Assembly: GCA_965202585.1 (NCBI GenBank)
Contig: OZ241827.1
Span: forward strand, 54,560,001 to 54,624,000
Reading direction: 5' to 3'
DNA from: Thalia democratica
Lineage: Eukaryota
Length of the DNA stretch: 64,000 bases
This document shows, in pieces, positions 3,955 through 45,419 of this stretch. The position numbers were made by a program, and so were the translations under genes. Each line of letters starts with the position of its first letter. The first letter of the stretch is position 1. A model generated the notes under the pieces. That model was not told where the DNA came from. It saw only the letters and a list, made by a program, of their open reading frames with translations, and did no database searches.

Positions 3955-6835
3955 ATAAGCTCTTTACATCCCAGTAAATTGAGCATTCTTTTATAATTAA
4001 GGCAAATAACTATATAAAAGTTTACTTAAAAAACTTAAAGTTTATTAAACACCTTAACAGGACCTTAATATAAATGATAATGTTTTTGGCATATATACAG
4101 CAGGGTGCATCCTTTGAATTTTTATCTTAAATAATTTTGCACCTTGACCCCATTGAAATTGTTTAATATTGATGGTAGAAACATTATTTACTGAGTTAAA
4201 CCACTTTTATGTGTCTAGAAAATCTTGTTAAAAACTATTGAAAACAAAATTCGCCTAATTTATCTACACTTTGAAAAAAAGTTATTGAGCTTATTTTTGT
4301 GAAATACTCCATAATGTTGAGTTAAGAAAATAGAATGCATGCTTGTTGTTCAAAAATAATTGCAAACTTTGTTTGTAAATATTTTCATTAAACAAGCAGT
4401 TTTCATCAAGATCTATGCATATAGGTGATAACAAACCCTATACAGTTTATTTTTTGTTTTAATATTTACAGTCAGTAAAATTGAAAACTTAAAAACACTG
4501 TAAGAGCACAAGTAAAAAGTTTACTCCTACGCTTATTGCCTTGACTTAAGATTACACTGTGAAAAGAAATTAAAGTTTTGTATAAATGTATAAGTCGTTA
4601 ATTTTTCTTAAATAGTAATATAAAAAAAAAAGTTTCATGGAAAAAGCTTAATTACATTTATATGAACATTCAATGTGTTGACACTCATCTAGTAAGTATT
4701 AGGTTGGAAATCGGCAGAAATAAATATGCATAAAAATACCAAGAAAATAAAGAAAGTCTTATGTTTTACAAGAAAAAACATATATAAAATAAGACTGAAA
4801 TTTTTATCAATAATTTTGATATTTTCAAATATGTGTTTTTTTTAATATACTTTAACTCGTGCTTTTTGTACTTAAACCTAAACATAAACTCAATTTTTAG
4901 TTATACGGTTATTTTATTTTTAGTTTTGAAGTTTTTAAGGTAACACAATATAATCCGATAAAAATGACTAGATTTTAAACAATTCTTTGTAAAACATTAT
5001 TCTTAGTAACGCTATTAAGTTTAGCATATTTTTCGAATTTAATTATTTTAAAATACTTTTTTTACTGTGTCTTATTGAAATTAAAAATAACTCATAGCTA
5101 TTTGCTTTAAAATACAAGTTTGAAAAGTCAAGTTTTTAACTCTAATGATTATACAATTATAGGATAAATTAGTACATATAATAGCCAGGAATTAAAATTG
5201 TAAAAAAAAATCTCTAAAATTTTGATCATTGAATTAAATTTAGTTTTGTGTTCTGCTTTGTAAGCACAAATGCAAAAGAAAGATTTAATAAATACTTTGA
5301 GGAAATAAAAAAATAACCTACCATTGCAATGCTCAAGTAGTAGTTACATACAGGAAACAAGAAAAGAATTTCTATATTATTCTTTTTACACTAATTATTT
5401 TTGATATTAACTAAAGTTCCCTTTTGTAACAGATACACATTTTTCAATCAATCTTATCATGTTTCATAAGTCATCGCCTATAATTAAAAACTAAAATTAG
5501 TGTTAAACCTAAATAATTTAGGTAGGTTTATAACACATTTTTATTAAATTGTTCACTTAAAATAACATTACAAAAACCAAATAATAAGCATAAAAATTAG
5601 TAAGTAAAGCTAGTACAATTAAATGATAAATTTATTAACTACAAAACACAACAAAGCGAAAAATCTTAAAAAATAAAAGCTTATGAGAAAATCCAGTTTA
5701 TATAATGCTTTAAAAATAAAATAATTTTTTCACAACTTTAAAACTGTACTTAATTCTTTTTTTTTTGAAATTTATATTGTGGTCATAAATAGTTATTCCC
5801 TCTTTCCCAAACTCTTTATGTTTTTTCTACTTTTGGCCCTGATGTAAATCAAATAATTGTATTAGATGCTTTTATCCTGTAAGATTCAATATTTAGTCTG
5901 AGTCACTTAATATAATCTTATTGAAGCAATGTATGTCTATTAAAAATAGTATTAGAAACAAATATATCTTTTCCAGTATTTTTTTTAAATATTTATACCA
6001 AGTTTACCATACAATCAAGCTTTGTCAAAGTTTTGAAAATTTCAGGCTATTTTTCTAGAACTCAAACTAGATTGAGTCGATTAAGTTTTCAATGTTGTGT
6101 TAGTTAATAGGTAATATGTATTTTTCTGTTTAACTTTTATAATTGTGTAATGTTTTTTTTTCAATAACTTGCTAAAATTTCGTGTCTTGCGGTTTTATCT
6201 CCTTTTATAAAACATTTCAGTTTTTATTTGATTGATAAATTTGAAAATAATGATGATAATATTAGCAATTAATTTAAGTACATAGAAATAAATTGAATTT
6301 AATTTTAATTAGTAAATCAGAAGTAAAAGCGTATACTTACAGTCTTGGTGTTAATAGTTTAACATTTTATAAGTATATTATTCTATGATAAAGAGTGAAT
6401 GGCAACTTTTAAACAAGTTTTTTAGTAAAATTAGGCCATTTTATAGTGACTCAGGTGATTTTGCCTCATAAAGTAGAAGTCCTGTTATATGTTTAATAAA
6501 ATCTTCCGAGCTTTGTATTTTGAAAATAATTTTTTATCTGTAACTAAAAGTTTTTAACTAAAAAAGTGGGTTAGTTATTACTAGCTAGTAAATTAAGTAA
6601 GTTTTAATATGAAACTCTGGTTTTAAGTTTCAATACGATATTCAACTATTCAGTTAAAAGTAATAATATACTGTATTTCCTTAAAAAGTGAAATGAATAC
6701 GTTTGCTTCCATAATATAAACTTTTCTGTTTTGTTAATGTGATCTAAGCACAGCTCCCAAGATAAATTGAAAAATGTATCAAATATCAACTTTTTTTCTT
6801 TGTTATTATTAACCAGCACACAATTTAAAACAGCA

Positions 6836-21097: not shown

Positions 21098-24000
21098 GGG
21101 TGGTTGTCAGAATGACACAGCGACAAAATGACACGGTGCGTCACTTTGGCACGGTGCGTCACTTTGACACGGAGGGTCACTTTGGCACGGCGACAAAATG
21201 ACACGGTGCGTCACTTTGGCACAGCGACAAAATGACACGGTGGGTTACTCTGGCACGGTGCGTCACTTTGGCACGGAGGGTCACTTTGGCACGGCGACAA
21301 AATGACACGGTGCGTCACTTTGGCACAGCGACAAAACGACACGGTGCGTCACTTTGGCACAGAGGGTCATTTTGGCACAGCGACAAAACGACACGGTGCG
21401 TCACTTTGGCACGAAGGGTCACTTTGGCATAGCGACAAAATGACACGGTGCGTCACTAAAGCATGAATTAACAAACTTATAAGCAAAACTAAACTTCTTT
21501 AGTAATATACTATTGTAAAATTTTGATAGTAATTAGTTAAACAAAAGATATATTATATTTTTCCAAACTATAGTAGCTTGATACATTTCAAACTATATAT
21601 AATACAATGCTTTAAAATTTAAGTCATAGTATAAAAACAAAAATGTTCCTAAGTTTTACTTTTTACGTTTCACGACTTTTATTTTTATGTAATGAATAAA
21701 ATTTAGTACTTTTTGTCAAACGTTTAATTAATTATTATCAGAAATTGTTATAAAAAATAACTAAGATTTTATTTAATACAGAGTTATTTCGTTGTAAGAA
21801 TAATTCATGCGTGTTTTAACTCTAGTTTTAAAAATACAGAGTTAAGCTGCTTTTGTAGTAACTAGCCAGTTATATTAAATATGTTTAGTTATTTAACCTA
21901 GTAGTTCGTTTAAAAATAAAGTTTTTTATTACTGTTTTTTTAAACGACAAAAGGTTATCGCTCGAAAAGTTATACCAAAGAACATTTCAGTTATTGAGTC
22001 GTAAATCACATGCTTTAACAATCTATAACGAGCAGTTAAAAATTTTTTTTTTTAATGTTAAGTCCTAAATTTCCGAAAGCATACAAAAAAACATTCAACA
22101 AAATTTAATAAGTTAAGATGTTTACTTAAAACTGTGTATTGAAAATGTATAATAAACTTGTCTAAAAGCAAATAATTAAAATAAACGGTCCTGGAGCTTA
22201 AATTTAAAAAAACTATAAATAGTATTATTAACAGTTGAGAGAAAATTTAAAGTCTGATGCAACCATTCATGCGCATTTATATATTTATCACTTTTAAGAA
22301 AATTAAGCCTTAGAGGTTATACAACTTGAGTCCTAATAAATCAAAATTAGTTGTTCTTAAAAATAGTGTATTAAATGTTAAGTTTATCGTCAATTTAATT
22401 AATTCTATTAAAGTTAATACTCTTAAGTCTTTTTTATTTTTATCAAACTTTGTAGCCTGAAATATAAAGAATTAAACTTAGAGTATGACAGATATTATAG
22501 TACTTTATTGCATATAAGGAAATAAATAGCATTTATACCATTAGTTTTAGTATTATAATAGTAAGAAAAATTGTATTTTGTTAAAGCAAGTCTACAATTG
22601 TATTACAAGTGTGTAGTTGTGGTTTATTGAGATTTATTTAAAGAGATGCTTGATGTAGGGAATGTTTTGCTAAAAAAACTAATTTATTTGCGGTTATTTG
22701 TACTTATACTTTTATCTATGCATTTTTAGTGCTTAGGTGCACAATTTTATTTGCGAAAGAGCATTATATTTCTACTTCTAAGTGCACGATATATGTTGCA
22801 ACTAACATAAGTCGCATAGAGGCGCAAAATTTCGATCTTTTAAGTCAAGTGCATAATAATTTTTTGAAGATGTTGCTAGTAAATCGTCAGGGAACGCAGT
22901 ATCTTAGTTCAAAATTGCAACCTATTAAGTCGCCAAAAGAGCGCAAGTATTACTTTTTTTATGCATAAAAACGTAAAATAATAACCGCATTAGAATTACA
23001 ACAGCAGAAAAGTTGTGTTTGATAACGTCTGAGTTTTAGTTTATAAAACTAATTTTCCTCTGTGTTTACATCTACTAGTTTATTGTTTTGATGTGCTGAA
23101 TGATTGATCTAAAATGTAGATTGTATTTTTTAAATCAGAATGTTGCTGAAGTTTAAAAAATATGTTCATATTAGTTTTTATTTTCTAGTCGTAAAATGGC
23201 AAGTCATTTTCTAGTTTTTATCACTCGTTTCAAGTTCTAGTACAAAATTGTGTTTAAGTTTTTCCATTCGAAAGAAATCAAAAATAAATTCCCTTTAATT
23301 TTGGCAATCGTATTTTGTTAAAAAAGTTGCTGCTTTTGCATTTTTTCTGAACGTTGTTTGATACAAATAATTATTTGTCGTTTATTAAGCACACCTTACA
23401 CCTTGCTACAGCTTAAAAATGAGTATGCTGTTTATAAGTACGACGATGGACAATAGAAGGTATAAACCTTACGTGTTATTTATTTTATGAAGTCACAATC
23501 AAAAATTCCTGCGGTTTTTGTTTTTAAAGTTAGTCAATGTGATTGTTGCTGATTCTACAAAACCGGTTAGAAGACAGGAAACCGAAAAGTTTCCTAGAAA
23601 AATAAGATCGCTGTGCATACCAATGAAGATTGAAGTTTCACAACAAATTGTTCCCTCCCTTATTAACCACCGTGTCATTTTTTCGCTGTGCTAAAGTGAC
23701 CCCCGTGTCATTTTGTCGCTGCTGCAAAGTGACCCTCCGTGCTAAAGTGACGCACCGTGTCGTTTTGTCGTTGTGCCAAAATGACCCTCCGTGCCAAAGT
23801 GACGCACCGTGTCGTTTTGTCGCTGTGCCAAAGTGACGCACCGTGTCGTTTTGTCACTGTGCCAAAGTGACGCACCGTGTCGTTGTGCCAAAGTGACCCT
23901 CCGTGCCAAAGTGACGCACTGTGTCGTTTTGTCGTTGTGCCAAAGTAACCCTCCGTGTCAAAGTGACGCACCGTGCCAAGGTGACGCACCGTGTCATTTT

Positions 24001-24252
24001 GTCGGCGTGCCAAAGTGACCCTCTGTGCCAAAGTGACGCACCGTGCCAAAGTGACCCACCGTGTCATTTTGTCGCTGTGCCAAAGTGATGCACCGTGTCA
24101 TTTTGTCGCCGTGCCAAAGTGACCCTCCGTGTCAAAGTGACGCACCGTGCCAAAGTGACGGACCGTGTCATTTTGTCGCTGTGCCAAAGTGACGCACCGT
24201 GTCTACTTGACGACCGTGTCATTTTGTCGCTGTGTCATTCTGACGCGCTCCC
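21098..24252. mobile_element. Foldback/MULE-like element with long modular tandem-repeat inverted arms and 9-bp TSD
   Basis: Perfect 9-bp TSD CACATAAGT (21089-21097, 24253-24261). GGG termini followed by GTCAGAATGACACAGCGACAAAATGACACGG on both ends. Arms at ~21098-21457 and ~23668-24252 are built from 16-18-bp modules. The AT-rich centre has no transposase ORF. Confidence 0.9.
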
Positions 24253-25508: not shown

Positions 25509-26293
25509 ATACACAATTAATGCTAATACTAGGCTCATTATGGTTTAAACTAGGGTTCCCTAAAAAAGCTAGTTACAACATAAGTTAGCGGATTTTTGAA
25601 GATACTTTTAGTCTAGCGTGCACAGTACGTTGCTAGAAAACAAAATATGTGCACAAATTTTGAAAGGTTTGAAGTTCTAACTTTTAACAAAATTTATAGA
25701 TAGTTAAAAATTAATTCAGAACGACAGACAAATTGCTAACAATAAAACACAGTAATCAAGCAAAGGATTGTTAAATGTTGTGAAACAACAAAAATTTTAA
25801 ACTAAAAAATAAGGATTAAAAATGTGTGGTTGTGAAAATTTATCGTTCAAAAAATTAACACCATTTAAAAGTTTCAAACTTTAACAGCTTATGATAAAAT
25901 TTATGATTTTTTAAGTTAAAAATACAATTAAAGTAAAAATTTTGATAACTTGCGTTTAACTTATTAGCTACTTGAAATATACGACCAAATAACTAATTTA
26001 TAAAAATGTTGGCCGTTTTATTTTAAAAAGAGTGCTTAGATTATAACAAAACCTGGTAACATTTTTTAACAGCATATTTTTTAACATTTCTATTAAACAG
26101 AAATGACTAAAATTTGTATCGCTTTGAGAATATATATGAAACATCACAGTTTTCTTTGAAATCACAGTTAAATTTCTAAAAACAATCCGATTCTTAAAAC
26201 AGTTATACTAAAACGTATTTGCTTGTGAAATATAAACCTTTTTTTTTAATTTTAATGCAAAATACTTAATAAAAACTTAAAAACGACTCATCT

Positions 26294-29200
26294 TCAAGGG
26301 GAAATCCTCAACCGGCAGTTGTTCTTTTTTACCCAATCAGGAATGCCGCTGACTTTCTTCGACCAATCAGAGCTTTTTCTCGCTTTTTTCGACCAACCGG
26401 AGCCCTTGCTTGGAGATTTTTTACGCGGGAAGTCGGGCGATAAGCTCAGCTTTTTGTCCCACGGTTTTTTCGTCCGCTTGGTGACGGCGGGGAGGCCGAA
26501 CCTTTCGTTCTTTCCGATGTCGACGGCCGGCAGAAAGTTCCTGTCGAAACTGTGGCTGGTTTTTGTCTTGCCGAAGGTGGCGGGAACGATTTCGCCGTGT
26601 CCCGAGTAAAAGCCGCCGTCTGATTGGCTGCCTCCTTGGTTCAGTGGCGTGAACTTGGATCGCGTCGGAAAGCTGCGAATTATTCAAAAAATATTCTTTT
26701 GAGTTTTTAATTTGTTTTGGTAGCTTTAAATCATAGTTAGCTTTAAAATATCAAACTTTTTTCTAACAACATGTTTTTTGAAACTAAGAAATATTAAAAA
26801 TGTTCATAAAATGCTTATCAAAAATACTTTAACGCTGCAAAAGGCAGTCTGAAAAATAAGACTCTTTAAAGATCAAAAAAACGTAACCATCTGGTTTTAG
26901 TTGCGACGCAAAAATCAACTGTTTACCTCAAAACGAACTAAAAACTTTACCTGATCACCTTTTTTGAATAATAAAAGCAATTAAAGCATTCGTTAAACTT
27001 TCATCGGGTAATTTTCCATTCTAAACTTCACAATTTGCAACTAACTTGTTCTGTTGATTGTTGAACACTGATATCGGGTTGAAGTTGGTTTTGGTCGGCT
27101 GCAGCAGAAACCCCTTCCTCGCATTTCTCCCTTGTGACGTGACTTTAGCCAGGTTCTTGTTCCGCCTGACAAAGTCCTGCTTGCCGGTCGTCGGAGTGAA
27201 AACTATCGCGGAGATTTTTTTGGAGCTGCTTTGGGGATTTTTTTTGCTCCGCGTCGAATTGGAGCTGCCCGCCGAGGAGTCGTTCGCAGCGTCGCCATTG
27301 GCTGATTTTCTCGTCACGGGGCTTCTGCTGGGCGTTTTCCTGCTCGGCGGGCTGCGATTGGTTATTTTTCTAGTTACGGTTGGATGATTTTTGCTTTCAG
27401 CGTGGCTGGAGTACGACCACCTTCAAAATTTTTATAGACAACTTTATTAAGTTAATTGGAACCCTTACAAAAGCTTTAACGTTTTTAGACATGTTTGAGC
27501 TGTTCAAAATAAGGGCACAACTGTTTTAAATCAAGTTACTTAAATGACATATTTATCTTTAATGTTAGGTTTATTAAATAAACATGGTAACTTTTCTACG
27601 TGTTTTTAACTATATGTAAAATCTGAAAGAAAAACAAAGTATTGTTAAAAAAATAAATCTGTAGAAAGGACTTTTTTAATGTAAGGATATTAAAAGTACG
27701 CCGAACTTCTTAGTGTATGCAAAATGTAATGAGAAAAATCAAGTAAAATTTAGATAAATCACTAACAGTTTAAAGTAGCTTATAACATTGTCCAAAGTAG
27801 TTAAACTTATAAACTAATACTAAAAATTTAAGTTTTACCTACAAAATCACGATAAAACACAACTAGCGTAACTTTAGCGGTGGCTGAAATATTGTTTAAA
27901 CTAAAAAAAATGTTTTAAATAATTTTACATCCAAGAAAAAAAGCTTTCAAGAGTATAAGCTTAAATGTTTAAAACTAACAAAAATAAACTATATTTAGTG
28001 GCAAACCATTTGAAAAAATAAATAGTAAGATTTTAACATTGAAGCAAACAAACTTGGGTTTGTTATTTGCATCTACAGGTTCGCTTTTATCAATGCTTAT
28101 TTTCGACCATTTCCTACTCGTTGACTTTTTACCAAAAGACGTATTGCTTCGCGAGTTTTGTATTTGCCTGCAAGTCACTTTTTTTTTAAACATCTTAAAT
28201 ACCTGGAAACTTCTTTAAAATTGCAGTTAAATTAACAAAATATACTATTGAAATAAAAAAATATATTTCAATAAAATAAACAAAAATAACTTCAGCACAG
28301 AAAGCCTCAAGGTGTCCATGGTGTTAAATTCCGAATGTTGTACATTCGAGTTAGGGTTTTCCCCGGCCATATCCAGCGCTGCAACCGCCAGCGCCTTACC
28401 GACGCCCTGCCACGTGACGGGGGAGTACCTGGGGGGAAACTGGACAGGTTCGTGGTTGCCGGGCAACGAGTTTATGGTGATTCCCGTGTTGTAGTTGCAT
28501 TCCAATGTGTACGAATGCACTATACCGGTTGCCTGGGTGTTTATTTTGTTAACTTTAAGTTCACATAGATTTTAACAACTCATCAAACTAAAAATATTTT
28601 AGTACTTATTAATATTTTTTGTAAAAAAAAAATATAATGTGAAAATTGTTTTGTACATTAAATTGGAAATTATAATTAAAGGTCAGTCTGGTTTGCAAAC
28701 TTGCTGAGTCTGCAACTTTTTTCAAACCAATTTTTGAATATATTCTTATTTATACCCTTATCCCTAATTTATACACATTAAAAATTAATAAAAAACAACA
28801 ATTTAAAATAAAAGTATCATGAAATAAAACTATTTTTGCTGACTTAGCAAATGTGCAAATTCAAACAAAAAAAAACCTTGTAAATGGCGACCCTCCCACT
28901 GCCGTCTTTGCACATTCCGTCTCTCTTGTCGCGCATGTACATGTTCTTGGTGGTGAAGTTGCACGCGTTGTAGTCGAAATGAGCCGAGTTGAGCGACACC
29001 AGTTTCGCGTACAACTGGTTGTCTACCTACAAGTTATTAGTTGGTTGTCTACCTACAAGTTATTAGTTGGTTGTCTACCTACAAGTTATTAGTTGGTTGT
29101 CTACCTACAATTTATTAGTTGGTTGTCTACCTACAAGTTATTAGTTGGTTGTCTACTTACAAGTTATTAGTTGGTTGTCTACCTACAAGTTATTAGTTGG

Positions 29201-32200
29201 TTGTCTACCTACAAGTTATTAGTTGGTTGTCTACCTACAAGTTATTAGTTGGTTGTCTACCTACAAGTTATTAGTTGGTTGTCTACCTACAATTTATTAG
29301 TTGGTTGTCTACCTACAAGTTATTAGTTGGTTGTCTACCTACAAGTTATTAGTTGGTTGTCTACCTACAAGTTATTAGTTGGTTGTCTACTTACAAGTTA
29401 TTAGTTGGTTGTCTACCTGCAAGTTATTAGTTGGTTGTCTACTTACAAGTTATTAGTTGGTTGTCTACCTACAAGTTATTAGTTGGTTGTCTACCTACAA
29501 GTTATTAGTTGGTTGTCTACCTACAAGTTATTAGTTGGTTGTCTACCTACAAGTTATTAGTTGGTTGTCTACCTACAAGTTATTAGTTGGTTGTCTACCT
29601 ACAAGTTATTAGTTGGTTGTCTACCTACAAGTTATTAGTTGGTTGTCTACCTACAAGTTATTAGTTGGTTGTCTACCTGCAAGTTATTAGTTGGTTGTCT
29701 ACCTACAAGTTATTAGTTGGTTGTCTACCTACAAGTTATTAGTTGGTTGTCTACCTACAAGTTATTAGTTGGTTGTCTACCTACAAGTTGTTAGTTGGTT
29801 GTCTACCTACAATTTATTAGTTGGTTGTCTACCTACAAGTTGTTAGTTGGTTGTCTACCTACAAGTTATTAGTTGGTTGTCTACCTACAAGTTATTAGTT
29901 GGTTGTCTACCTACAAGTTATTAGTTGGTTGTCTACCTACAAGTTATTAGTTGGTTGTTTACCTACAAGTTATTAGTTGGTTGTCTACCTACAAGTTATT
30001 AGTTGGTTGTCTACCTACAAGTTATTAGTTGGTTGTCTACCTACAAGTTATTAGTTGGTTGTCTACCTACAAGTTATTAGTTGGTTGTCTACCTACAAGT
30101 TGTTAGTTGGTTGTCTACCTACAAGTTATTAGTTAGTTGTCTACCTACAAGTTATTAGTTGGTTGTCTACCTACAAGTTATTAGTTGGTTGTTTACCTAC
30201 AAGTTATTAGTTGGTTGTTTACCTACAAGTTATTAGTTGGTTGTCTACCTACAAGTTATTAGTTGGTTGTCTACCTACAAGTTATTAGTTGGTTGTCTAC
30301 CTACAAGTTATTAGTTGGTTGTCTACCTACAAGTTATTAGTTGGTTGTCTACCTACAAGTTATTAGTTGGTTGTCTACCTACAAGTTATTAGTTGGTTGT
30401 CTACCTACAAGTTATTAGTTGGTTGTCTACTTACAAGTTATTAGTTGGTTGTCTACCTGCAAGTTATTAGTTGGTTGTCTACTTACAAGTTATTAGTTGG
30501 TTGTCTACCTACAAGTTGTTAGTTGGTTGTCTACCTACAAGTTATTAGTTGGTTGTCTACCTACAAGTTATTAGTTGGTTGTCTACCTACAAGTTATTAG
30601 TTGGTTGTCTACCTACAAGTTATTAGTTGGTTGTCTACCTACAAGTTATTAGTTGGTTGTCTACCTACAAGTTATTAGTTGGTTGTCTACCTACAAGTTA
30701 TTAGTTGGTTGTCTACCTACAAGTTATTAGTTGGTTGTCTACCTACAAGTTATTAGTTGGTTGTCTACCTGCAAGTTATTAGTTGGTTGTCTACCTACAA
30801 GTTATTAGTTGGTTGTCTACCTACAAGTTATTAGTTGGTTGTCTACCTACAAGTTATTAGTTGGTTGTCTACCTACAAGTTGTTAGTTGGTTGTCTACCT
30901 ACAATTTATTAGTTGGTTGTCTACCTACAAGTTGTTAGTTGGTTGTCTACCTACAAGTTATTAGTTGGTTGTTTACCTACAAGTTATTAGTTGGTTGTCT
31001 ACCTACAAGTTATTAGTTGGTTGTCTACCTACAAGTTATTAGTTGGTTGTCTACCTACAAGTTATTAGTTGGTTGTCTACCTACAAGTTATTAGTTGGTT
31101 GTCTACCTACAAGTTGTTAGTTGGTTGTCTACCTACAAGTTATTAGTTGGTTGTCTACCTACAAGTTATTAGTTGGTTGTCTACCTACAAGTTATTAGTT
31201 GGTTGTTTACCTACAAGTTATTAGTTGGTTGTTTACCTACAAGTTATTAGTTGGTTGTCTACCTACAAGTTATTAGTTGGTTGTCTACCTACAAGTTATT
31301 AGTTGGTTGTCTACCTACAAGTTATTAGTTGGTTGTCTACCTACAAGTTATTAGTTGGTTGTCTACCTACAAGTTATTAGTTGGTTGTCTACCTACAAGT
31401 TATTAGTTGGTTGTCTACCTACAAGTTATTAAATGGTTGTCTACCTACAAGTTATTAGTTGGTTGTCTACCTACAAGTTATTAGTTGGTTGTCTACCTAC
31501 AAGTTATTAGTTGGTTGTCTACCTACAAGTTGTTAGTTGGTTGTCTACCTACAAGTTATTAGTTGGTTGTCTACCTACAATTTATTAGTTGGTTGTCTAC
31601 CTACAAGTTATTAGTTGGTTGTCTACCTACAATTTATTAGTTGGTTGTCTACCTACAAGTTATTAGTTGGTTGTCTACCTACAAGTTATTAGTTGGTTGT
31701 CTACCTACAAGTTATTAGTTGGTTGTCTACCTACAAGTTATTAGTTGGTTGTCTACCTACAAGTTATTAGTTGGTTGTCTACCTACAAGTTATTAGTTGG
31801 TTGTCTACCTACAAGTTATTAGTTGGTTGTCTACCTACAAGTTATTAGTTGGTTGTCTACCTACAAGTTATTAGTTGGTTGTCTACCTACAAGTTATTAG
31901 TTGGTTGTCTACCTACAAGTTATTAGTTGGTTGTCTACCTACAAGTTATTAGTTGGTTGTCTACCTACAAGTTATTAGTTGGTTGTCTGCCTACAAGTTA
32001 TTAGTTGGTTGTCTACCTACAAGTTATTAGTTGGTTGTCTACCTACAAGTTATTAGTTGGTTGTCTACCTACAAGTTATTAGTTGGTTGTCTACCTACAA
32101 GTTATTAGTTGGTTGTCTACCTACAAGTTGTTAGTTGGTTGTCTACCTACAAGTTATTAGTTGGTTGTCTACCTACAATTTATTAGTTGGTTGTCTACCT

Positions 32201-35200
32201 ACAAGTTATTAGTTGGTTGTTTACCTACAATTTATTAGTTGGTTGTCTACCTACAAGTTATTAGTTGGTTGTTTACCTACAAGTTATTAGTTGGTTGTCT
32301 ACCTACAAGTTATTAGTTGGTTGTCTACCTACAAGTTATTAGTTGGTTGTCTACCTACAAGTTATTAGTTGGTTGTCTACCTACAAGTTGTTAGTTGGTT
32401 GTCTACCTACAAGTTATTAGTTGGTTGTCTACCTACAAGTTGTTAGTTGGTTGTCTACCTACAAGTTATTAGTTGGTTGTCTACCTACAAGTTATTAGTT
32501 GGTTGTCTACCTACAAGTTATTAGTTGGTTGTTTACCTACAAGTTATTAGTTGGTTGTTTACCTACAAGTTATTAGTTGGTTGTCTACCTACAAGTTATT
32601 AGTTGGTTGTCTACCTACAAGTTATTAGTTGGTTGTCTACCTACAAGTTATTAGTTGGTTGTCTACCTACAAGTTATTAGTTGGTTGTCTACCTACAAGT
32701 TATTAGTTGGTTGTCTACCTACAAGTTATTAGTTGGTTGTCTACCTACAAGTTATTAGTTGGTTGTCTACCTACAAGTTATTAGTTGGTTGTTTACCTAC
32801 AAGTTATTAGTTGGTTGTCTACCTACAAGTTATTAGTTGGTTGTTTACCTACAAGTTATTAGTTGGTTGTCTACCTACAAGTTATTAGTTGGTTGTTTAC
32901 CTACAAGTTATTAGTTGGTTGTCTACCTACAAGTTATTAGTTGGTTGTCTACCTACAAGTTATTAGTTGGTTGTCTACCTACAAGTTATTAGTTGGTTGT
33001 CTACCTACAAGTTATTAGTTGGTTGTCTACCTACAAGTTATTAGTTGGTTGTCTACCTACAAGTTATTAGTTGGTTGTCTACCTACAAGTTATTAGTTGG
33101 TTGTCTACCTACAAGTTATTAGTTGGTTGTCTACCTACAAGTTATTAGTTGGTTGTCTACCTACAAGTTATTAGTTGGTTGTCTACCTACAAGTTATTAG
33201 TTGGTTGTTTACCTACAAGTTATTAGTTGGTTGTCTACCTACAAGTTATTAGTTGGTTGTCTACCTACAAGTTATTAGTTGGTTGTCTACCTACAAGTTA
33301 TTAGTTGGTTGTCTACCTACAAGTTATTAGTTGGTTGTCTACCTACAAGTTATTAGTTGGTTGTCTACCTACAAGTTATTAGTTGGTTGTCTACCTACAA
33401 GTTATTAGTTGGTTGTCTACCTACAAGTTATTAGTTGGTTGTCTACCTACAAGTTATTAGTTGGTTGTTTACCTACAAGTTATTAGTTGGTTGTCTACCT
33501 ACAAGTTATTAGTTGGTTGTCTACCTACAAGTTATTAGTTGGTTGTCTACCTACAAGTTATTAGTTGGTTGTCTACATACAAGTTATTAGTTGGTTGTCT
33601 ACCTACAAGTTATTAGTTGGTTGTCTACCTACAAGTTATTAGTTGGTTGTCTACCCCTGAGTTATGCTGGATTATAAATACTTATTGTTGAAGGTGAAAT
33701 TAAACAAGAATTATGCTGTGGTTACCTCGTTTTATCAAAGCCAACTATAGGTAAAAATTAAAGTTCTGAAATAATGATTAAACTGTCTAGTATTACACAA
33801 TAGTAAAATGGAGTAGGTAATATTCCTTTCAATACAAAAAATAACAAAATAAATCCGGGTCAAAACTCAACATCATCGAAAAAAACTAAAAATCACACAG
33901 TCGTACATTACTTTAAAAAAAACCAAGATTTTAAAACCTGGTCTTCAGTTTTATCGAGGTGGTTTCCGTATATGACCACGTAAATCTGCGGGTACCTTAT
34001 TTTACCGAAGTTGATTATACGTAAACAAAATTAAGTTCGCTACAAAGATTAAATCATCCAGTACAACAGAGGAAAAATAATAGTAAAAGGAAAAGGTAAA
34101 TGTGGTACTAATATAAAAGATTAACTCAAATCAAAACTCAACCTGATCGAAAACAAATTAAAAACCAAATGAATCTAGTTTACAAATGACCCCACAACAT
34201 CAAACCTGATCGTCGATTTTATCCAAGTGGTTGCCGTATATGAAGCAGCCCCTCTTGCTCGCGTGACCGTGCAAGTCTATGTAGTAGCTGACACCGCTGT
34301 CCCTGGACGGCAGCAGAGAGTACTCCATGTTGTACCAGCTCGTCCGGCTCGCCTCTCTCGTTGAAGGGGGAGTTACCTAATGCAGGAAGATAAGTTGATT
34401 GGGTAGTTTATTTTTTTAATTTGAATGTTTTATCAAAAAAAAGTTATACTAAAGTCTTTTGAAAATAACTTTTAAATTGGCAACGCTTTTCAAAGTTTAA
34501 AACGTAATTTAAAGAAATAATTTTGTAAAGTACATGCATTTGGCAATATTTGTAACAACTAAAAGTAGCTCGTTTGGTGTTTACCGTTAGTTTTTTTTTG
34601 TAAATGACATTGAAACGGCGTTTTTAAAACAACAAAACAAACCTTGTCTTGTTTCTTCATGTAAATGATGACATCGGCCATCTGATTGGTCATGATTTCT
34701 TGTTCGGAAGACGTGATTGGAAGGTCGTCTTGTTTGGGATCGTGTTTGAACAACTTTATCCAATCTTTGCCACCGGTGATTTCGTGAACCTGTAGTTAGT
34801 AAGAACTTCAAAACTGTATTTTGTGTTAGCTTAAAATAAACTTGTGTTTTATTTCCGAGTCTTTGAATTGTTCGATTTTATGATAGCTGAAATAATATAC
34901 TCTAACGCGTTAGTGGATTTACCTGCCAAACAGTTTGTTCATAACTATGAAAAAAATACATATTACAGCCTCCGCATTTCAGAGGCAGCGAAACAAAATT
35001 GAGCGAATAAAGCACTTTCGTACAAAAGCAGTCGTTACGCTTTAACAATCATCCACTACAAAACTTCAAACCACTCTTACATGCTAGTATAAACGACTGT
35101 CGAGTGCTTGAACTCAACGCATTTCCACTAAAGACCAACCTGATCAGCGTTGCTCGCGTAGTAGAGGTGGTAGAAGAGCATGAGGGCTTTCGAGGCGAAT

Positions 35201-38200
35201 ATGGTCGGGTGGTTTCGTTTGTGGGGGTTCTTGTACACCCTGTTCAGGTTGCAGCCCAGGTTGTCGGTCCTGTAGTGGCCCCGGGACACGCCGTCCGGAT
35301 TAAGCATCGGGATCAGCTTGAACACGTATCTGGTTTGAATAAACAAGGGTTTATAAATAATAAAAAAATCTTTGAAAAAAAAATTGTCAATGAAACATAA
35401 AAAGAAAGTGGTAATTGCCGTTCATAAGTAAATAAGCTAACAACAAAACGTGTTTATTTATCATTGAGTTCCGCTTAAAAATACTAAAACCTATTTTTGA
35501 ATCAAACTTTAGTTGCAAACAAATCTGAGTTATATCATTTATTTAAAATCTTTTGTGTTTTATCAATTAAAGTGTTGGTAACAAAACAAAAAACAAGTGA
35601 TAATTGCTTTTAATAAGTAAATAAGCTGAATGTGTTAGATTTTTTTTACAGTGTACAAAAATTGGATTCAGTCCGTTGTGGAAGGGAAATGGAAATAATG
35701 ACTTTTGGTGCAAAGTCAATGTTTCTAATGTTTACAAAAATTAAATTCTATTGTAGCCCAAAATTATACCTGTTGATTTTAAAAAATTAAATAGTAACTA
35801 ATATATTTTAAATATATAAATAGTAGATTAGTTTAATAGAAAAAAAATCTAAATCAGGAATAATGACATGCAGATTGTGCTTAAAAGATGCTTTATAAAT
35901 ACTTGAATCTGGTACAAGTCGCATCAACAAAAGAACGGAATTAATGAACTCATGCAGACACAGAAACAAATGTTAATTAATAAACTGGAAAGCAGACAAA
36001 ACTTTAACCAGATTATAATAATAGTACAAAATAGTTTTTTTTTGACTTTTTCATTCAGTTTTTGTTGATATTTGGTTTAAGTTAAAACTTTTTAGATAGT
36101 TCTTAATTCAACTAAGATAAGTTTTTAGAATTTTTCTTAGATAGCTCTTAAATCCTTTTAATTTTGACTGTTACAATTTAACACATATAAGACTTTGAAA
36201 TTTTCAGCAAATTTGAGTTTTATTAATGTTTTGTTGACTCTTGGCTTAAAATCACAATTTTAGATAGTTTTTAATTCCATTTAGATAAATTTCAAGTTAT
36301 AAATGTCTTTAAACTTTAAACTTAAAAAAAGCTCTTAATTCAGTTTTTTTTTTGTTTGATTCATTATATTATATTAATTAAATTCAATTCGTTTTAAAAA
36401 CTAGTACCATTTTTATCTAATTATTCTCTGACATGCTTGAATTTTCGAATATGTAAAGGTCGTAATTTTTTGCCACCGAAACCGGTCGTGAATAAAGTAT
36501 TTAATTTGCACACCTCTATTTAAAATTAAGTAGTAAAAAAATCAGAACAAGAGCTTACAGACTTAAAGTAGTAGCTTTAAAACATGTAATTACTTACACG
36601 TTTTTTATAAAAATAGTTTTATTTAAACTTAAAATAGGCAAGTAAAACTCACATTTTAATTATTTTTTGATGTAACAGCTCTGGCTGTTTAGTAAATTAT
36701 GTTCATAAAGTAAATTATGTCAGTGTCTAAAAAAACATGATAACTAATTTTAAGATTAAATTAACTAAAAGGTTTAAATTCCGTCACATTGGATAAAACT
36801 GTATATAAAAAATAAAGTCTTGTTAAAAACAAAATAATGCTTAATAGGGATTACTTTATAGCAATAAAATAATAATGTACAAAATTAAGATAAGGTGATT
36901 TGATATATAAACACAAAAGTGTACTTTAAATGCTCAACATTGGTAAATTTTTCGAAAAATGCAACAACAGAAAAAGTTGTTTTAATTGTGAAAAAAAATA
37001 TTCATTCAACTATTACTCGAACTCATTAAAGAATACTTTAAAATATATTTATGAAACTAAGAAAAGACAAACTAAATATATTTTAATTTAAATTAATATC
37101 TAAATAGATTTATCTTCAGCGTTGATTATTTAATTCTAAAAAACCACAATAAAACATTCAAAAAAAACTTATCAACGCGCCAAATTGGAGCAAACCGGCA
37201 TATCTTTAGTTGTAGAAGGTTTTTGAATTATTTTTAGAGCTCTAAACGACTTAGAACCTTAGCTTTTGGCTGGTGATTAAAAAAATCAAAATAGTTCTTA
37301 TTTCTATTTGCGGATCCACATGCCAAATAAACTCAAACAATTTTAAAGTGTTTAACTACACAAGACGTCATACAGAACAAATTCACAAGTGAACAAACTT
37401 GCTTCTTAGCAGTTTCGCCCTCTCATCTTCATCATCAAGTATGAACTGAATGAAGCCGTTAAACACGTGACTTGCAGGGGTTTCCCCGGGATGAACACGT
37501 GACGAGAGGAAAAACACTTTCTTGTTGTTGAACCTGTTGAAAAATTAACAACAGTTATAAAATCTATATTCTGTTAAAACTAATAAAGCATTTGTTTAAG
37601 AATGAACTATTTAACATTGCTGTATGATATTACAAAGATTAAGTAAAGTACCTTTTTACAGCTGAAAAATTATCCATTAAATCGCACATGTTATGGTTTT
37701 ACAGAACTTTTACATATAATTTTTAACTTTTTCAAAAAAATTATCTATAAAAAACTGTTTAAAGTAAATACTTGTTTGTTTTTATTTATAGCCATATATT
37801 TTTTTACTTGTAAGTTAAATTAAAAAAAAACTAATTACCTATGAAGGTATTGCCATGTATTTTTTTCAAACATTTTTGAACTGCTTTATAAAATTCAAGT
37901 AAATCTGATTTGTTTGAATAATATGAGTTAAACTTATACAAAGTCATTTAAAGTAATCTGATTTTTTTTTCTAAAAAAAATTATTTAAACCATCTATTTA
38001 ATAAAAATTTATAAAAAACAAAATTTAATTTAACAAAAAATTTAAGCTTTGTGAGAAAAACCATACATGAAAAGTAAGAACACCTAATACTAAGGCATAG
38101 TTTTGAATCTTACTTTTAAGCTATTTACGAAACCTTCTATAAACACTTAAAGACTACATCATAAACAATTTTTTTTTTGATAACTTTGAGCAAAAGAAAT

Positions 38201-41200
38201 AACAATAGTTATAATAATAAAGCAAAATTAAACCTACCTTTAGCAAAAGTTTTTATTTAAAAAATCATGTTAAACAATACTTAATTTACTTATTAAAGGG
38301 TTACAACTGTATTTTAAAATATGTCTGAGTTAAAAAAAAAATACTAAGTATTTTTAAAGTAAAGTTGAGCAAAGAGGTTTAAGTAACTGCTAAACTTTTT
38401 TCCAGCTGATTAAATTTAAAAGTTGCAGTCACTTTGTTAGTAAAATCTGGTTTCCTAAACTACTGGATATTACTTATAACTCATTGAAACCTGAAAGATA
38501 GTTCCGAAGCTAAATTTTAAAATACTTCTAAATTCTGATCAGTTTTAAGTTCTATACCAGTCTAACGTGCTAACAGATTGTACAACGAAAATTATACGTT
38601 GCTAAACAACTTTTAGGTTTTAAAACCTAAAAACTTTTTTTTCAACCTGAATACTAATGTTAAACTATAATTTAAAATTTCAGATTTTTTTACACTTTTT
38701 AAAAGTATCAAAGTTAGCTTAGCAACAAATTTTCATATAAGAAGTTTAATGTAAGATTAGATGCTACAAAATACCAGAATGAAGACCCAGTACAATACTA
38801 CCCTAGACAATACTTCACAAAACTCTATAAGATCCCAGTAAAGTTTCAGCCTGTCGTTCTAACATATTAGTTATTAGATTATTAGTGTTGGTAACTTCTT
38901 AAACGATAAAAACAGCTAAGTTATAACTAAACTTTTAAAATTATTTTTTTTTTTAATTGAAATTTTATTATTTTAAAAAACACAATTACACTGTTTCACC
39001 GCAAAACGGATTTTCGAATTGAAAGAGTTTATACAAAAGACGAAACTGTAAAAGTGTGAACAACTTATTTACAACAGTACTAGATAGCTTATTTTAAATA
39101 TTTTCTCCTGTTGGACCAGAAATTAAACTAGCTTAACTCCAAAGAAAAAATTCTTATGTGTTGGAGAATAAAGTTCTTGAGTATATTTTAGAGTTAAGTT
39201 TTAAAAAATGGCTAACAAATATTCAAAGAAAACGATAAAAACTTTCTATAAGTTGAAAAAAGAAAAAAATTGCTTATTGTTTAAAACCACTTATATATTA
39301 ACAGTGGGATTGATCAGTTTGTTCACTTAGTGCTGATTTCACAGTCACTTTGTCTTTAAAAAAGCTTGCATTTACTTAAATAGCTTACACTTTCATCTTT
39401 TAACAAAAGTTGTAAACATTAAACAAATACTTTGAAAATAAATCCTGCGTACATAAACATAAAAAAATCAAACCAAACGAACTTGAAACTTATTTTAAAA
39501 TTAAAAAACTAACACCTTTAGTTTATATTTTAACCTTTAAAATACTTTCAATCCTCAATAGTTTTTTAGTATACGGTTAAACACACCATCTGAAAAGTCC
39601 ACCAAAAACAAAGTTAATTTCTGTTTTTTTTTTCAAGTATTCCAAGGGTTTTTGTGGTGATGGAACAATGTTATTAGGAATGAAAAGAAATACAGTTTTA
39701 TAACTGTACCAATTTGTTTTATTAATAATTTATGTTTTATTAAATTTGTAATAAAAACATTCAAAACAACATACTTATGGGGTCTTGGCCTGCTTTCATC
39801 GGGGAACAACCCGCAAATTCTGGGCTCCCTCTCACCAGTCAAGCCGTTGTGGTCGGTGATGGTTATGACGTCACAATTCCTACCGTCTATCGTAAAGCAC
39901 GCCACCTCGCGGTAGTAATAAATGGAAGATTTGCGTGGCGTTTGCTGAACATTTGCTAAAAAATAACATTTTTAAGGAAAGTTTTTCTACAAAAATTAAT
40001 AAAGAAAATATTGTATTTGATTTGCTAATTAACCAAAAGTTAAACAAAACTATTTTTTATTTGAAATAAAAAAAACTTGTTGGCGGATCAATTTCAGTAG
40101 ATTCTTTCTGAATTTCAGTTGAGCTTTCATCTATATTGTTGGCATGCAAGTTATCAATACTAATACTTTGACTGTCACTAATTTGGTTTGACTCCGTTTC
40201 GTTTGTAATAGTTACATCAGGCTTTTTTATTTCCTCAATTACTTTTTTGAACCTCAAATCGAGGACCTAATAATTGAAAACAGCAAAATTAACCTAGTAG
40301 AAATTCAACATACAAAATTAATAAGAATCTAGACAAAACACTTATAAAAATAAACTTTAATCAGTTTTGTTTATTCAGTGACCGGCGTAAAACACTTGTC
40401 GATTGTTGCAAAAAGCTTTAAAAAAACTTTGCTTTGTGTGTGAAAGCTTTGCTAATTCAACTTTTTTTTATTGCGGTTTAACGACTTCATTAACAAAACT
40501 TTTTTTGTTTAAATCCTAAAATTTATTAATTGCTTCAAAATAAATCAAGTATGTGCATTTAAAGTGTGAGCTCATAAGCAGTTTATTTTTTTTTTAAACT
40601 ACAGCCGTAACATTGATGAGGTTTTATTCTGCCAAATGCTAAAGTACTTCTTAAATTTGATTGGCTAAAATTTGATTTCCGTTTATTTTAAGCTTATTTA
40701 ACTTTTTATTATTTAACTGAATGATCAAAAACATTTGTTATATGTATGTATAAGGTGGGCTACTGATATAGACTTACTTTTATGGGTAAAATAGGCTAGA
40801 AATAGAAGTTTAAATGTAGTATACTTTTGTATAAATTTAACAAACAAAAAGTTTGCAGCCTAAGCATATGCAGTTTTATTTTTGTAAAATTTAAAAAAAA
40901 ATTCTGATAAAAACCAACAGCGAGAGCGTTCTGCTGCTCAGTGTAGGAGTAAGGGTAGCAGAAGGCGAAGTAGGTTGACCGTCCCTCCGTGAACCGGTGG
41001 CAGAAGGACAGCCTGAACTGGCCGTCCACCGTCTCGCACTTCGGCCTGTCCCGCACCCTGGCCCACTTGGACCTGTGCGGCGGCTGGCGCACCATCGGCG
41101 CCATACCCTGGCTGTACAGCTTGCCCTGTGAACATATTGTGTGTAATTAACATAACAAGTTGAAAAACAGGTTGAGTTTATTTAAGTCTTGCTAATTAAA

Positions 41201-44200
41201 ATTATTCAGGTAAAAATTAAATTAAGGCCCATTCATCATTTGAACCTGGATATTAAAAATATAAATGTTTTTAAAACAGATAAGTTTATGATAAATAAAG
41301 TCTTGATCGCTACAATAACTAAGGTAAACTGTAAGCCGAAGTATTGATAAAAAATAGCAGAAGATTATTTAGTGAGTATAGCATTAAGTTTTTATCATAG
41401 TTAACAAAATATTAAAAACTTAAAAAAAATTAACAACAATTTAATTTGAAATTGAATAGTTCTGCGCAGCCAATAAAAAACAACAAATATACAAAACTAT
41501 AGAAGCAATTAAGTATTAGAGTAAATTTTTATACAGAATTTGTGTCTATAAGCCTGAACATATAAAAGTACAGACACTGTAATACGTTTTAATTCTCTAT
41601 TTTAAGATGAAGAAACACGTCATAAACAGAATCAAAACCAATAATTACAAATTAACAAGAAGGTTAAGTCTATCTTAAACTTTAAGTCAAGTTTATTGAG
41701 GTTATTAAGCAATGAGTAAGAGAAATAACAACACTTTTTTATACACACAAATTTTAAATTATTACTTTTTAAGTGTTTGTACGTAGCACACCTGTAAAGA
41801 CTCAAAAAAGAGTACCGGGTTCGAATAGTTTCACACAGAACAGTTTTGAATTAAAAACAAACAAATCAGTAGGAACCTGTCTGTTCATGTTGGTGATGTT
41901 TATCCTGATGAGCTTCCCGCTCTGATAGCCCCGGATTCCAAAGTAGAACCAGCTCCTGTTGCCGTTCTCGTGCTCGGTTCCCGCGCAATCCGGCTTCGTC
42001 TGCACGTTGAACTCGTAATCTGGCGGCACCTGGAAGCCCGCTCCCTCGTTCTCCTCATCTTCCGACTTCTCCACCTGCCAAACGGAAGTTTTGCATGAAA
42101 CGTTCGTGAGTATAAGAAACATATTAGCATGTTGAAAACAAAATTCCTGGCTCGTCTGTTTTTCTTTGATTTATGGGGAAACTAAGTAATTAAAGCTTAA
42201 AAGACTTATTTTGTAAAAATATTTTGCGGCTTGTTGAAAAAAAGTTGCACTTTAAAGCAGGGCTTCCCAAACTCCTGTTCAACAGAGGTTCGAGTTACAT
42301 GAAATGATCGTGAACAAAATTCACATGCAACATGCGTGTTTTTTCGGTCATGGAGAATTGAAAAGCCTGGTTATTTTTACTTGTACCTCTTATGGTAAAA
42401 GTGTTTTTTGTTTTAAAAAAAACCACGCTGTTGTCGAATTATCTTTAATTGCTTGTTTTTATGCTAATAGCTCGGGTATTGAATTTTTTTTTAAACTTTA
42501 AGAGGTGTTGTTTAATGAAAGAGTTTCAACTTTATAACTTTTTTTCAAATGTAAACAGTTTCTATTATATTTTTGTCTCTAAATGCCATTTTGTTTTAAA
42601 CACTTACTTACCAGTGGTGTATAATTCTGATTTTTGCTACTAAGTTTAAAAGTTCAAAGTTTTTTTTTAGCTTTACAAAGATTTTTAAAGTTATAGTAAA
42701 ATTTGAAATCTAACATTCATTTATTAACATGTAATTATAGAGATGAAAACATTTCCTTCCTTATAAAAAGTCAGTTTTCAAGTGTACAGGGTTGCCACTT
42801 GTTTTTTCAAAAATTTTTGCAGGTTTTCCAAATTTCTTCCAGGTTTTTAAAAGTACACATTTTGGGTTTATTTTTAGTTAAAAATTAAGTTTAAGGTAAG
42901 AAACTGTGTTAAATAGTAAAAAAACATCAAAAAGATACTGTAAAGGTACTTTAAATACGTTTTTTAATAAAAATAATTTTTGATGATGACTAAAATTTTT
43001 AATTATATGATAGATTTTTAGAGTCAAATCAAAACTTTTTGATTTTACATGTTGAAAATTCCAGATTTTTTTTACCTAAATTGCCAAATTCCAGATTTTT
43101 CAAGGTTTTTCCAGGTTTCCAGGTAAAGTGGCAACCCTGAGTGTATTATAACTATTTTTTCAACATTTTATGTGGAATAAAGCATTAGATAAAAGTTTAT
43201 TATTTGTCTAATAGCTAGCCAAAAATTTTTTTTTTACTTTAAAATCAGTGAATTTATCAAATTTATTGCTAGCTTATAATATTTAACAAATAATTGATTT
43301 TCAACATTTTTTCTAAATAAAATTTTTGATGAATTAAAATTTACTAAAACATTATAACATCTTAATCAATAATTTAACTTTTAATCATAAAGTTTCCGAG
43401 AAAATAATTAATAATAAAAATTCATCATAGTTAAATATGACTTTTCCGTTAAAAATTTATAAAAAATTTATGAAGAATATAATTATCTTAGACAAGTATC
43501 AATTTTATGGTAAATTATTTATAGTTTTTCACGTTTAATCAGGTGTTTTTAATCTACAGTACCATCAGCTAATTTAAGTTCATTTTTTACATACAAAAGG
43601 TAAATATGGTTTATAAAAAATTCATAAATTAAAACTTCCTATTAATTTCGGTGAACGTATTATAGTTGTATACAAAAGCAAAGCAATTTAAGGTTAGATG
43701 AATAGTTTTCAAAAAGTTCAAAACAAATTGCTTGCCAGTTTTTTATTTAGCAAAATGTTTAATAACAATTTTTTAAGTTTAACAAAAAAGAAAGCAAGGA
43801 AATGTTAATAAAAAAGCAAAACTGCAAAAAAACTGTAAACTTTTAAAGATAAACAATTTAATCATTCCACACAGACTAGAATAATTTTTGTATCTTTAAA
43901 CATTGAACTATAAGTTATAGTAAAAACAGTTTTAATTACTTAAATTTACTTAAACAAATTCACTTTTAAATGCTTTTAATTTTACTTTAAAGATTAGTTG
44001 TTAAAAGCATAGGGAAGGGAGATAGGAAAAATTTTTACATTTTGACATGTTTTTAGTGTTTAACTTAGCTAAAAGTTATTTTTTTACTGTTTATAAGAAA
44101 TTTAATAAGTTTATTAGATATAAGGGTACAAAGTAGGTTCAATAGATTCTTCATAGTGCCCAGTTTAAAAGAATATTTAATTAAAATTTTTATTTCATCT

Positions 44201-44568
44201 AAGTTTTTTAAGCAACCGGTCTCAAATTTTTTTACTCTACTCTTAACTTAATAACAAAAAGCTGTATGGTAGAAAACTTTTTTTTCGTTTTTAGTTATAA
44301 AATATTTATTTGTTTTTAAATAGAAATTTTATAGTGCAAGGAAGATTTCATGAAAAACTGAAATCAGTTGCTTAACAAATGATGAGGACAATACATTTTT
44401 ATTAAATCTTAATTTAAATATTTTCTACATGAAACAAATTATAACTTTATTCATTACATTTTTGCTTATACTTACTAAAGTTTAACACAGACTTACCTTT
44501 TCAACCGAACCTAAGTTTCCAGAGTCAAAATTTGAAAAGAAAAGGAGACCACCACACTTGATTTCCAT
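26294..44568 (-). CDS. AGBL5: Cytosolic carboxypeptidase-like protein 5 (CCP5), 13 coding exons: 44568-44497, 42074-41877, 41125-40919, 39944-39775, 37533-37399, 35329-35140, 34789-34643, 34376-34206, 29026-28877, 28532-28291, 28202-28054, 27420-27046, 26672-26294
   Basis: [90 protein letters not shown] and YTLECNYN all match CCP5/M14 motifs. All introns are GT-AG with consistent phases, except that exon 11 is 1 nt short (T9 run at 28179-28187). About 861 aa if corrected. Confidence 0.95.
28877..29026 (-). CDS. AGBL5: AGBL5 exon 9 ([50 protein letters not shown])
   Basis: 150 nt, phase 0-0. Matches the CCP5 segment [11 protein letters not shown]...[18 protein letters not shown]. Its acceptor is the last unit of the 26-bp array. 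Confidence 0.95.
29016..33655. repeat. 26-bp tandem array (TGGTTGTCTACCTACAAGTTATTAGT), 178 periods, in AGBL5 intron 8 and overlapping the start of exon 9
   Basis: The unit phase at 29016 recurs at 33644 (178 x 26), so there is no net indel. Only scattered single-base variants. Confidence 0.98.
33938..33985 (-). other. Duplicated end of AGBL5 exon 8; candidate 48-nt in-frame cassette exon ([16 protein letters not shown])
   Basis: cccgcag|ATT TAC GTG GTC ATA TAC GGA AAC CAC CTC GAT AAA ACT GAA GAC CAG|gtttta, compared with the exon-8 end [13 protein letters not shown]|gtttga. Downstream intron sequence is also similar (33860 vs 34131). Confidence 0.55.
35848..35975 (+). mobile_element. Penelope-like element 3' remnant (C-terminus of the GIY-YIG endonuclease region)
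   Basis: Translation [12 protein letters not shown]...[16 protein letters not shown] resembles the PLE C-terminal pattern CxLCLxEK...LNKRxEL..xCRHxNK. Confidence 0.6.
36366..36523 (-). repeat. Partial inverted copy of the 3650-3954 MITE
   Basis: Matches the reverse complement of both ends of the 3650-3954 element with the middle deleted. Confidence 0.7.
42787..43139 (+). mobile_element. MITE of the CAGGGTTGCC-end family in AGBL5 intron 1
   Basis: TIR CAGGGTTGCCACTT / AAGTGGCAACCCTG. Perfect 6-bp TSD AGTGTA (42781-42786, 43140-43145). Confidence 0.92.
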
Positions 44569-45419
44569 TATTACGTCACAATTCAATTACATTTTTGTAT
44601 AATTCTGGAATAGTTTTTAAATCATTTACTAGATTAAAACATAAAATTCTGCATACCAAATAAAAGAATGAAACAAACTCTGAACAACATGAAAACTATG
44701 TAATGAGATATATAATCACAAAAAAACTATGTATAGTAAAAAACTTATTTATAGGTTTTTTTTTGATATTTCTGTTAAGTACACAGCAATTTCTTTTTGA
44801 TTTTAATTCCATAACATTTATTTGTTTCTTAACCTGTTTAGTTTCTATTAACAAATTATAAAAACATTTAATTTTCGCGTGAACTAATAAAATCAAATGT
44901 TATAATAATTTTTAAATTATCCGAATAAATAAGAAGAAAAATGTAAAAAAAACAGCAAAAGCATACAAAGCAACAATATGTTTAGTCATGAAAAATTTAA
45001 ATAAAAACAATTAAAATACTGCATGTATCAACTTTTCTTAAAGCATTGTTAAACAACAAAAATTTAAAAATATAACTTTCTTCATAGTTTACTACCGAAA
45101 ATTAAGCGAATCATAGAAATAATTGTCAGGCAAAAAGTTTGTTATATTAATCAAAATATAATAATTTAATAAAAGTGAAAACTATAAAATGGTGTAGTGT
45201 AGGTAATACATAATAGGAATAAAACTAACTGTGTGGGTGTAAAAACTCATTATAACAAGAAACCGTTTGTTGTATAAAACATAAGAAACAGCTTTTATAC
45301 TTTTAAAGTCATAACTTTAAAAGGTTTTAAAAGTGATGATTGAGTCTTAGCTAAAAAAATCAAAAGTTAACTTCTAAAAGCATCTTAAAACATTAACCAA
45401 AGTAAAAAAACAAAAGAAA

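Follow-up and report, generated by a model that had tools for sequence, protein, structure and literature searches.

The window analysed here is a stretch of 64,000 nucleotides from the tunicate Thalia democratica (GenBank assembly GCA_965202585.1, contig OZ241827.1, positions 54,560,001 to 54,624,000). Its minus strand carries a CCP5/AGBL5 gene, and intron 9 of that gene (29027–34205; 5179 nt, phase 0, as defined by mRNA mapping and by comparison with the ascidian Clavelina) is filled over 4628 of its 5179 nt (89%) by a tandem array of 178 units. Each unit is made of the final 15 bases of the intron and the initial 11 bases of the exon that follows, so that a long series of decoy 3′ splice sites stands before the acceptor in use. 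Positions below are those of the window.

The host gene was delineated with a 3128-nt metatranscriptome contig (L001) that encodes a protein of 913 amino acids and aligns spliced to the window in 14 exons between 44606 and 25978. The L001 protein carries PF18027 and PF00246, the N-terminal and M14 domains; single exons match solved CCP5 structures in the PDB (E 6.4e-19 and 2.6e-20); and the named full-length relatives are all annotated as cytosolic carboxypeptidase-like protein 5, the closest being those of the ascidians Styela, Ciona, Clavelina, and Phallusia. By these best matches and by its two domains the gene is identified as CCP5/AGBL5. The locus is present in marine metagenomes and metatranscriptomes, from which a pelagic life of the animal follows. 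A protein homologue search with the exon-11 open reading frame fragment P0001 returned only P0001 itself.

Some features of the gene may be recorded in passing. Exon 4 (40077–40266, minus strand) is AT-rich (34% GC) and by eye contains a low-complexity insert not seen in vertebrate CCP5 alignments, and the acceptors of the gene have weak pyrimidine tracts. Bases 19–34 of L001 read ATTCTATTTGAATAAG, which we take to be the 16-nt spliced leader (SL) of ascidians, and adjoin the first genomic exon (window 44604, minus strand; acceptor AG at 44606–44605). If that identity is right, the CCP5 mRNA would be SL trans-spliced, and the unpaired-looking acceptors of the array would sit in a trans-splicing organism.

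The borders of intron 9 were located by alignment to CCP5, by the mapping of L001, and by an RNA contig described below. The true upstream exon (34206–34376, minus strand) ends with ..IDDQ at CCP5 residue 455, and its donor, CAG|GTTTGATG, begins at 34205. The exon downstream of the array (28877–29026, minus strand) aligns gaplessly with CCP5 residues 456–505, starting V-D-N-Q against V-E-N-M, and its first 11 bases are the exon part of the unit. It is the tenth exon by mRNA mapping, not exon 9 as it had been numbered in the original prediction from the bare letters of the window. The AG of the terminal unit (29027–29028) is the acceptor in use according to the RNA contig and the spliced mapping of L001, and the next exon (28291–28532, minus strand, from the same mapping) encodes HSYTLECNY, which includes the catalytic glutamate motif. 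Because the exon boundaries are fixed by the CCP5 alignment, with which the RNA contigs agree, the division of the unit into 15 and 11 bases is correct; the unit spans the true exon–intron boundary and includes its splice signal. Two other placements were rejected. An in-frame acceptor, CAG|TTG, 12 nt into the exon is ruled out by RNA contigs that contain GTAGACAACCAG, and a sequence reading ..TEDQ|GT (33973–33938) is a decayed intronic copy of the upstream exon end rather than the end itself, which lies at 34206.

Tandem Repeats Finder (TRF) reports a single array at 29016–33655: it has 178.5 copies of a 26-nt period, which match at 98% and contain no indels. Walking the register gave 178 full 26-nt units, again without indels, at 29027–33654 on the minus strand, the unit being GTAGACAACCA + ACTAATAACTTGTAG. 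The repeats thus run head to tail and have the unit size of a minisatellite. The 26-nt unit was found nowhere else in the 64-kb window, and 0 of 100 shuffles gave a match. Consensus-identical units number 131 of 178 and variant units 47. The intron part ends in AG in 172 units, in AA in five, and in AT in one, which leaves 171 intact non-terminal acceptors plus the real terminal site. Each unit junction is AG|GT, and each decoy unit has a branch-like ACTAAT, in the ACTAAC version in 11 units, 10–11 nt before the AG; GTAAAC stands in place of GTAGAC in 15 units. The terminal unit leads into GTAGACAACCAG TTG TAC GCG of the real exon. The original prediction described the locus well: TRF, the register walk, the CCP5 alignment, and the RNA contigs all agree with a tandem array of splice-acceptor units before an AGBL5 exon, the register confirms that every unit joins a branch-point-like motif and its AG to 11 bases of exon at an AG|GT junction, and the estimate of about 170 decoys is matched by the count of 171. 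Its “178-period” was wrong, since 26 is the period and 178 the copy number.

The placement of the variant units is not random: they alternate with a period of 2 (10 coincidences, a figure that just the top one of 2000 shuffles attained), and longer variant motifs come back at intervals of about 40 units. The period-2 pattern is typical of minisatellite turnover and not of an assembler loop. Changes at the AG, 6 of 49 in 2 of the 26 unit positions, show the dinucleotide to be neither avoided nor favoured; since most variants are copies of each other, no inference about selection is drawn from their positions. At the 5′ edge of the array, the 16 bases directly upstream of the first unit (33655–33670, minus strand) look like a decayed partial unit, as suggested by comparing CCAGCATAACTCAGGG with CCAACTAATAACTTGTAG by eye.

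A short repeat might have been inflated by the assembler from a true locus with one or a few units, and the short-read contigs do all break inside the array. Contigs from sequencing runs were placed on 28040–29078, which comprises the exon side and two array units. In DNA run X1 (organism A) flank contigs have a word depth of 74–80 and pure array contigs one of 6583–6625; in DNA run X3 (organism B, with 1 differing letter in 1006) the flank stands at 55.5 and the array at about 5125. Across the two runs array k-mers are 82–92 times deeper than the single-copy flanks. Each consensus 31-mer is present about 124 times in the assembly, and with this multiplicity the depth ratios of about 86 (X1) and about 92 (X3) correspond to means of about 123 and about 132 units. 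These depths lie two orders of magnitude above the one or few units by which the original prediction would have recognised an artefact. They also argue against the unit being a dispersed satellite elsewhere in the genome.

Independent evidence comes from L003, a Tara metagenome contig that, because it is about 93% identical over 2.9 kb, represents a sister lineage. It starts with one partial and three full units, giving at least four acceptor copies, and then enters the exon. Its last units (L003:1–100) have TTGCAG in three, a rare variant in the window, and CCGAC in the terminal unit. Each of the two lineages has therefore homogenised its array on its own. A depth that suggests some 120–130 units rather than 178 could be taken in favour of inflation, but the 47 variant units form a structured, non-random pattern, and an artefact is scarcely credible. 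The array is real, because both the k-mer depth in X1 and X3 and a sister-lineage contig that also ends in the array say so.

Which acceptor the mRNA uses can be seen from run X4 (organism A), which has zero depth over the flanking introns and is RNA-like. A 3233-nt X4 contig (depth 54, no differing letters) covers 28052–28166, 28290–28531, and 28876–29028, and past 29028 its letters are those of the true upstream exon's end in reverse complement, ..CTTGGATAAAATCGACGATC. Since the contig runs from exon 10 into the upstream exon, the mRNA joins 34206 to 29026 by way of the last unit's AG: donor 34206|34205 is spliced to acceptor 29027|29026 with no array sequence between. Over the region examined, X4 has just one further record, a 56-nt pure array cycle at depth 31.4, or about 0.25× per copy and about 0.5% of the mRNA depth; this trace of array RNA is compatible with pre-mRNA or lariat remnants.

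Relatives of the gene splice in the same way. The mRNA contigs L001, L005 (88% protein identity), and L006 (75%) read ..CAG|GT[AG]GACAACCAG with no insert. L001 is 99–100% identical to the genomic contigs L002–L004, and the array-bearing sister lineage therefore also splices correctly. Use of a decoy would give an exon-to-array junction of ..GATCAG followed by GTAGACAACCAAC; no decoy junction occurs in the X4 contig or in the three relatives' mRNA contigs, all of which represent steady-state assembled RNA. At that level splicing is regular and the duplicated sites are silent. The array is wholly intronic as spliced and is removed with the intron in steady-state mRNA. The X4 contig, which comes from the same organism, and the three relatives' mRNAs agree with the first mechanism offered in the original prediction, in which the spliceosome passes over the decoys and the intron is excised with the entire array inside it.

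The intron is older than its contents. In Clavelina the orthologous intron, which had been singled out for inspection in related species, is 60 nt long, lies at the same phase-0 Q|V position, has the same AG|GT junction, and is followed by an exon that begins GTGGACAACC. At this intron position GT[AG]GACAACC opens the exon in Clavelina as well as in the relatives L005 (88% protein identity) and L006 (75%), which makes the exon part of the unit ancestral and the repeat a derivative of the exon. Because Clavelina shares both the intron position and the AG|GT junction, these are ancestral, and the array expanded within an intron that was already old. The position held in common with an ascidian rules out a gain of the intron by duplication, and the tandem-duplication model of intron gain cited in the original prediction does not apply.

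The donor side of the intron has a history of its own. A tandem duplication of about 265 nt, comprising the upstream exon's last ~38 bases, the donor, and the start of the intron, has left a decayed second copy at 33750–33985 (minus strand), matched to 34020–34250. Its pseudo-exon part (33938–33975) reads ..TEDQ|GTTTTA. Both borders of intron 9 have been copied. Among the gene's 13 introns a search for further border copies found only intron 9 at E < 0.01, and none in the other 12. A scan of metagenome contigs with the exon start (GACAACCAGTTGTACGC) for the genomic introns of relatives gave 68 loci, all of them chance matches, the best having 52 of 100 bases alike.

The closest known systems are the “mirages” of amphioxus, minisatellites of duplicated intron/exon boundaries described in Adh3, TnC, the globin genes BflGb6 and BflGb9, and PGBD5 (Canestro et al. 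2002 via PMC3087553; PMC3902484). Both papers, citing Canestro et al. 2002, report that mirages leave splicing undisturbed and vary in length, and the BflGb6 mirage duplicates exactly the 3′ end of an intron together with the 5′ part of the exon (PMC3087553; PMC3902484). The likeness to the array is close: in both cases the unit spans an exon–intron boundary with its splice signal, the exon-adjoining unit is authentic, the mRNA is regular, and there are signs of turnover and decayed edge units. As to length polymorphism, the estimates here are about 123 and about 132 units against 178 assembled, which are depths rather than sized alleles and at most hint at variation, and the sister lineage has different unit variants. 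The differences concern host and scale. The array lies in a tunicate and not a cephalochordate; it has 178 nearly perfect copies, compared with the 3–6 reported for BflGb6; its unit is very short (26 nt, with room just for a branch site, the AG, and 11 bases of exon); and it fills 89% of the intron. The array belongs to the known mirage class as an extreme case and is not a new mechanism.

A counterpart on the donor side is the 37-bp variable number tandem repeat (VNTR) in intron 7 (IVS7) of human F7. The first unit spans the exon 7 donor, the pseudo-sites are functional but silent, and 5′-to-3′ scanning picks the first donor, as shown with 50 constructs (PMC1557585). Like the array, the F7 VNTR is a minisatellite born of a splice junction in which identical pseudo-sites are silent and the exon-abutting site wins. 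There, however, the repeat has several copies of a donor and the first wins, whereas here acceptors are repeated and the last wins, a choice known from RNA contigs rather than from mutation tests. Expanded CAG repeats likewise offer many AG acceptors in tandem to upstream donors; they create acceptors that are used, giving aberrant RNAs (PMC10614865), whereas those of the array appear unused. Literature searches found no acceptor-side model of this size.

It is probable (roughly 0.78) that the array is a mirage-type minisatellite that arose from the old, conserved-position intron of CCP5/AGBL5, is spliced out with that intron, and persists as a neutral or slightly costly by-product. Most likely it reflects how strongly this genome tends to copy the borders of its exons and is not a regulatory device. 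A 26-bp segment across the 3′ splice junction of the old intron would have been duplicated in tandem, and slippage or unequal exchange would then have expanded it to the order of 100–180 copies.

Since decoys and real site read alike over a stretch that begins far upstream and ends at +11, the information that discriminates between them must lie downstream. Exon definition may provide it. The terminal copy alone precedes a real exon, which is rich in GC and has its donor 150 nt further on, and exon 10 has 52% GC against 34% in the array units. An exon defined from a decoy would consist of 11 exon bases followed by AT-rich units, each with the UAGG silencer motif; the array has 167 occurrences of TAGG and exon 10 has none, and UAGG is an exonic silencer motif in vertebrates (PMC1079783). 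When the 3′ splice sites of beta-globin were duplicated so that the upstream copy had only a short exon piece, splicing went exclusively to the distal site (PMC5389562). Masking of the decoys by RNA structure was considered and rejected, as a segment of four units and the beginning of the exon shows no more stable folding than shuffled sequences do (z −0.24). A small hairpin forms where the exon begins, and comparison by eye with L005 and L006 shows that the relatives do not conserve it.

Several observations weigh against the interpretation of the array as a silent by-product. The reasoning on exon definition and UAGG is borrowed from vertebrates, and the host is a tunicate. Assembled contigs lose rare isoforms, and nonsense-mediated decay (NMD) would destroy decoy-spliced RNA, so that low or moderate decoy use is possible; use of the nearest decoys would add just 26–52 nt and little array mass. 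The array is common to two lineages and its terminal units are consensus, which is compatible with function and is no evidence for it. Finally, the 123 or 132 units implied by depth are fewer than the 178 assembled, and X1 may be the very sample behind the assembly. Allele length differences, coverage bias, or assembly over-extension could account for the shortfall.

One rival explanation is a splicing rheostat, in which a sizeable share of transcripts would be spliced to decoys and degraded by NMD and array length would set CCP5 output. Because the upstream exon ends in phase 0, a decoy acceptor reads into a stop: GTA GAC AAC CAA CTA ATA ACT TGT AGG TAG encodes V D N Q L I T C R and terminates after nine codons, upstream of the YTLECNY exon, just as had been predicted. 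The alternative sites thus bring the premature stop expected of NMD-coupled splicing. All 171 decoys equal the real 3′ site from upstream to +11, each with its branch-like motif, the array has persisted in two lineages, and the departure of depth-based copy number from the assembly hints at length variation. Against this, the RNA contigs (X4, L001, L005, and L006) are free of any decoy junction, array RNA in X4 stands at about 0.25× per copy compared with 54× for the mRNA, and PMC3087553 and PMC1557585 report silence for mirages and for the F7 VNTR, respectively. A rheostat of this kind is rather unlikely. The tuning of output by unproductive splicing that had been put forward finds no support in the RNA contigs, an absence limited by the contigs themselves and by NMD. 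A length-variable rheostat or timer, in which copy number would set the fraction of transcripts caught by decoys, in cis or by SL trans-splicing, and degraded, seems quite unlikely. Were it true, a hypermutable minisatellite would adjust how much of a tubulin deglutamylase different individuals or lineages make.

Recursive splicing would instead remove the array stepwise, with a new GTAGAC donor arising at the AG|GT whenever a decoy has been spliced, as the original prediction also envisaged. Ratchet points of this type are known from Drosophila Ubx and from long vertebrate introns; they lie in very long introns and regenerate strong donors. The array shares with them the AG|GT juxtaposed inside an intron. 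All its unit junctions are of this form, and with the CAG at the end of the upstream exon a decoy would restore CAG|GTAGAC. The regenerated donor, however, is poor by the standard of the gene. The 13 donors (25978–44606, minus strand) are GTTKGT-like rather than GTRAGT, with T at +3 in 11 of 13, G at +5 in nine, and T at +6 in 12; GTAGAC agrees with them at the GT only, having A, A, and C at these positions, where +5 is never A and +6 never C among the 13. Moreover, fifteen units have GTAAAC, the intron is just 5.2 kb long, and no intermediate is found among the assembled contigs. Removal by re-splicing is disfavoured, and we regard it as very improbable.

As a mirage-type minisatellite, the array extends this class of boundary repeat from cephalochordates to tunicates, and it illustrates that a 60-nt ancestral intron can reach 5.2 kb purely through copying its own borders. 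It is probably the cleanest natural substrate for studying how the spliceosome chooses among identical 3′ splice sites, as the F7 VNTR has served for donors: ahead of the acceptor in use stand 171 intact copies, branch-like motif included, whose only differences from that acceptor lie past base +11. It is also a caution for gene predictors, to which every decoy scores exactly as the real site does.

Other repeats occur in the window. Two GC-rich arrays, at 21116–21457 and 23666–24234, have units of 18/34/52 nt, are mutual reverse complements (CACGGTGCGTCACTTTGG and GTGCCAAAGTGACGCACC), and are separated by about 2.2 kb; judged by this arrangement, the pair may mark a mobile element whose inverted ends consist of repeats. 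At 61615–62073 lies a 231-bp tandem duplication of two copies that are 89% alike.

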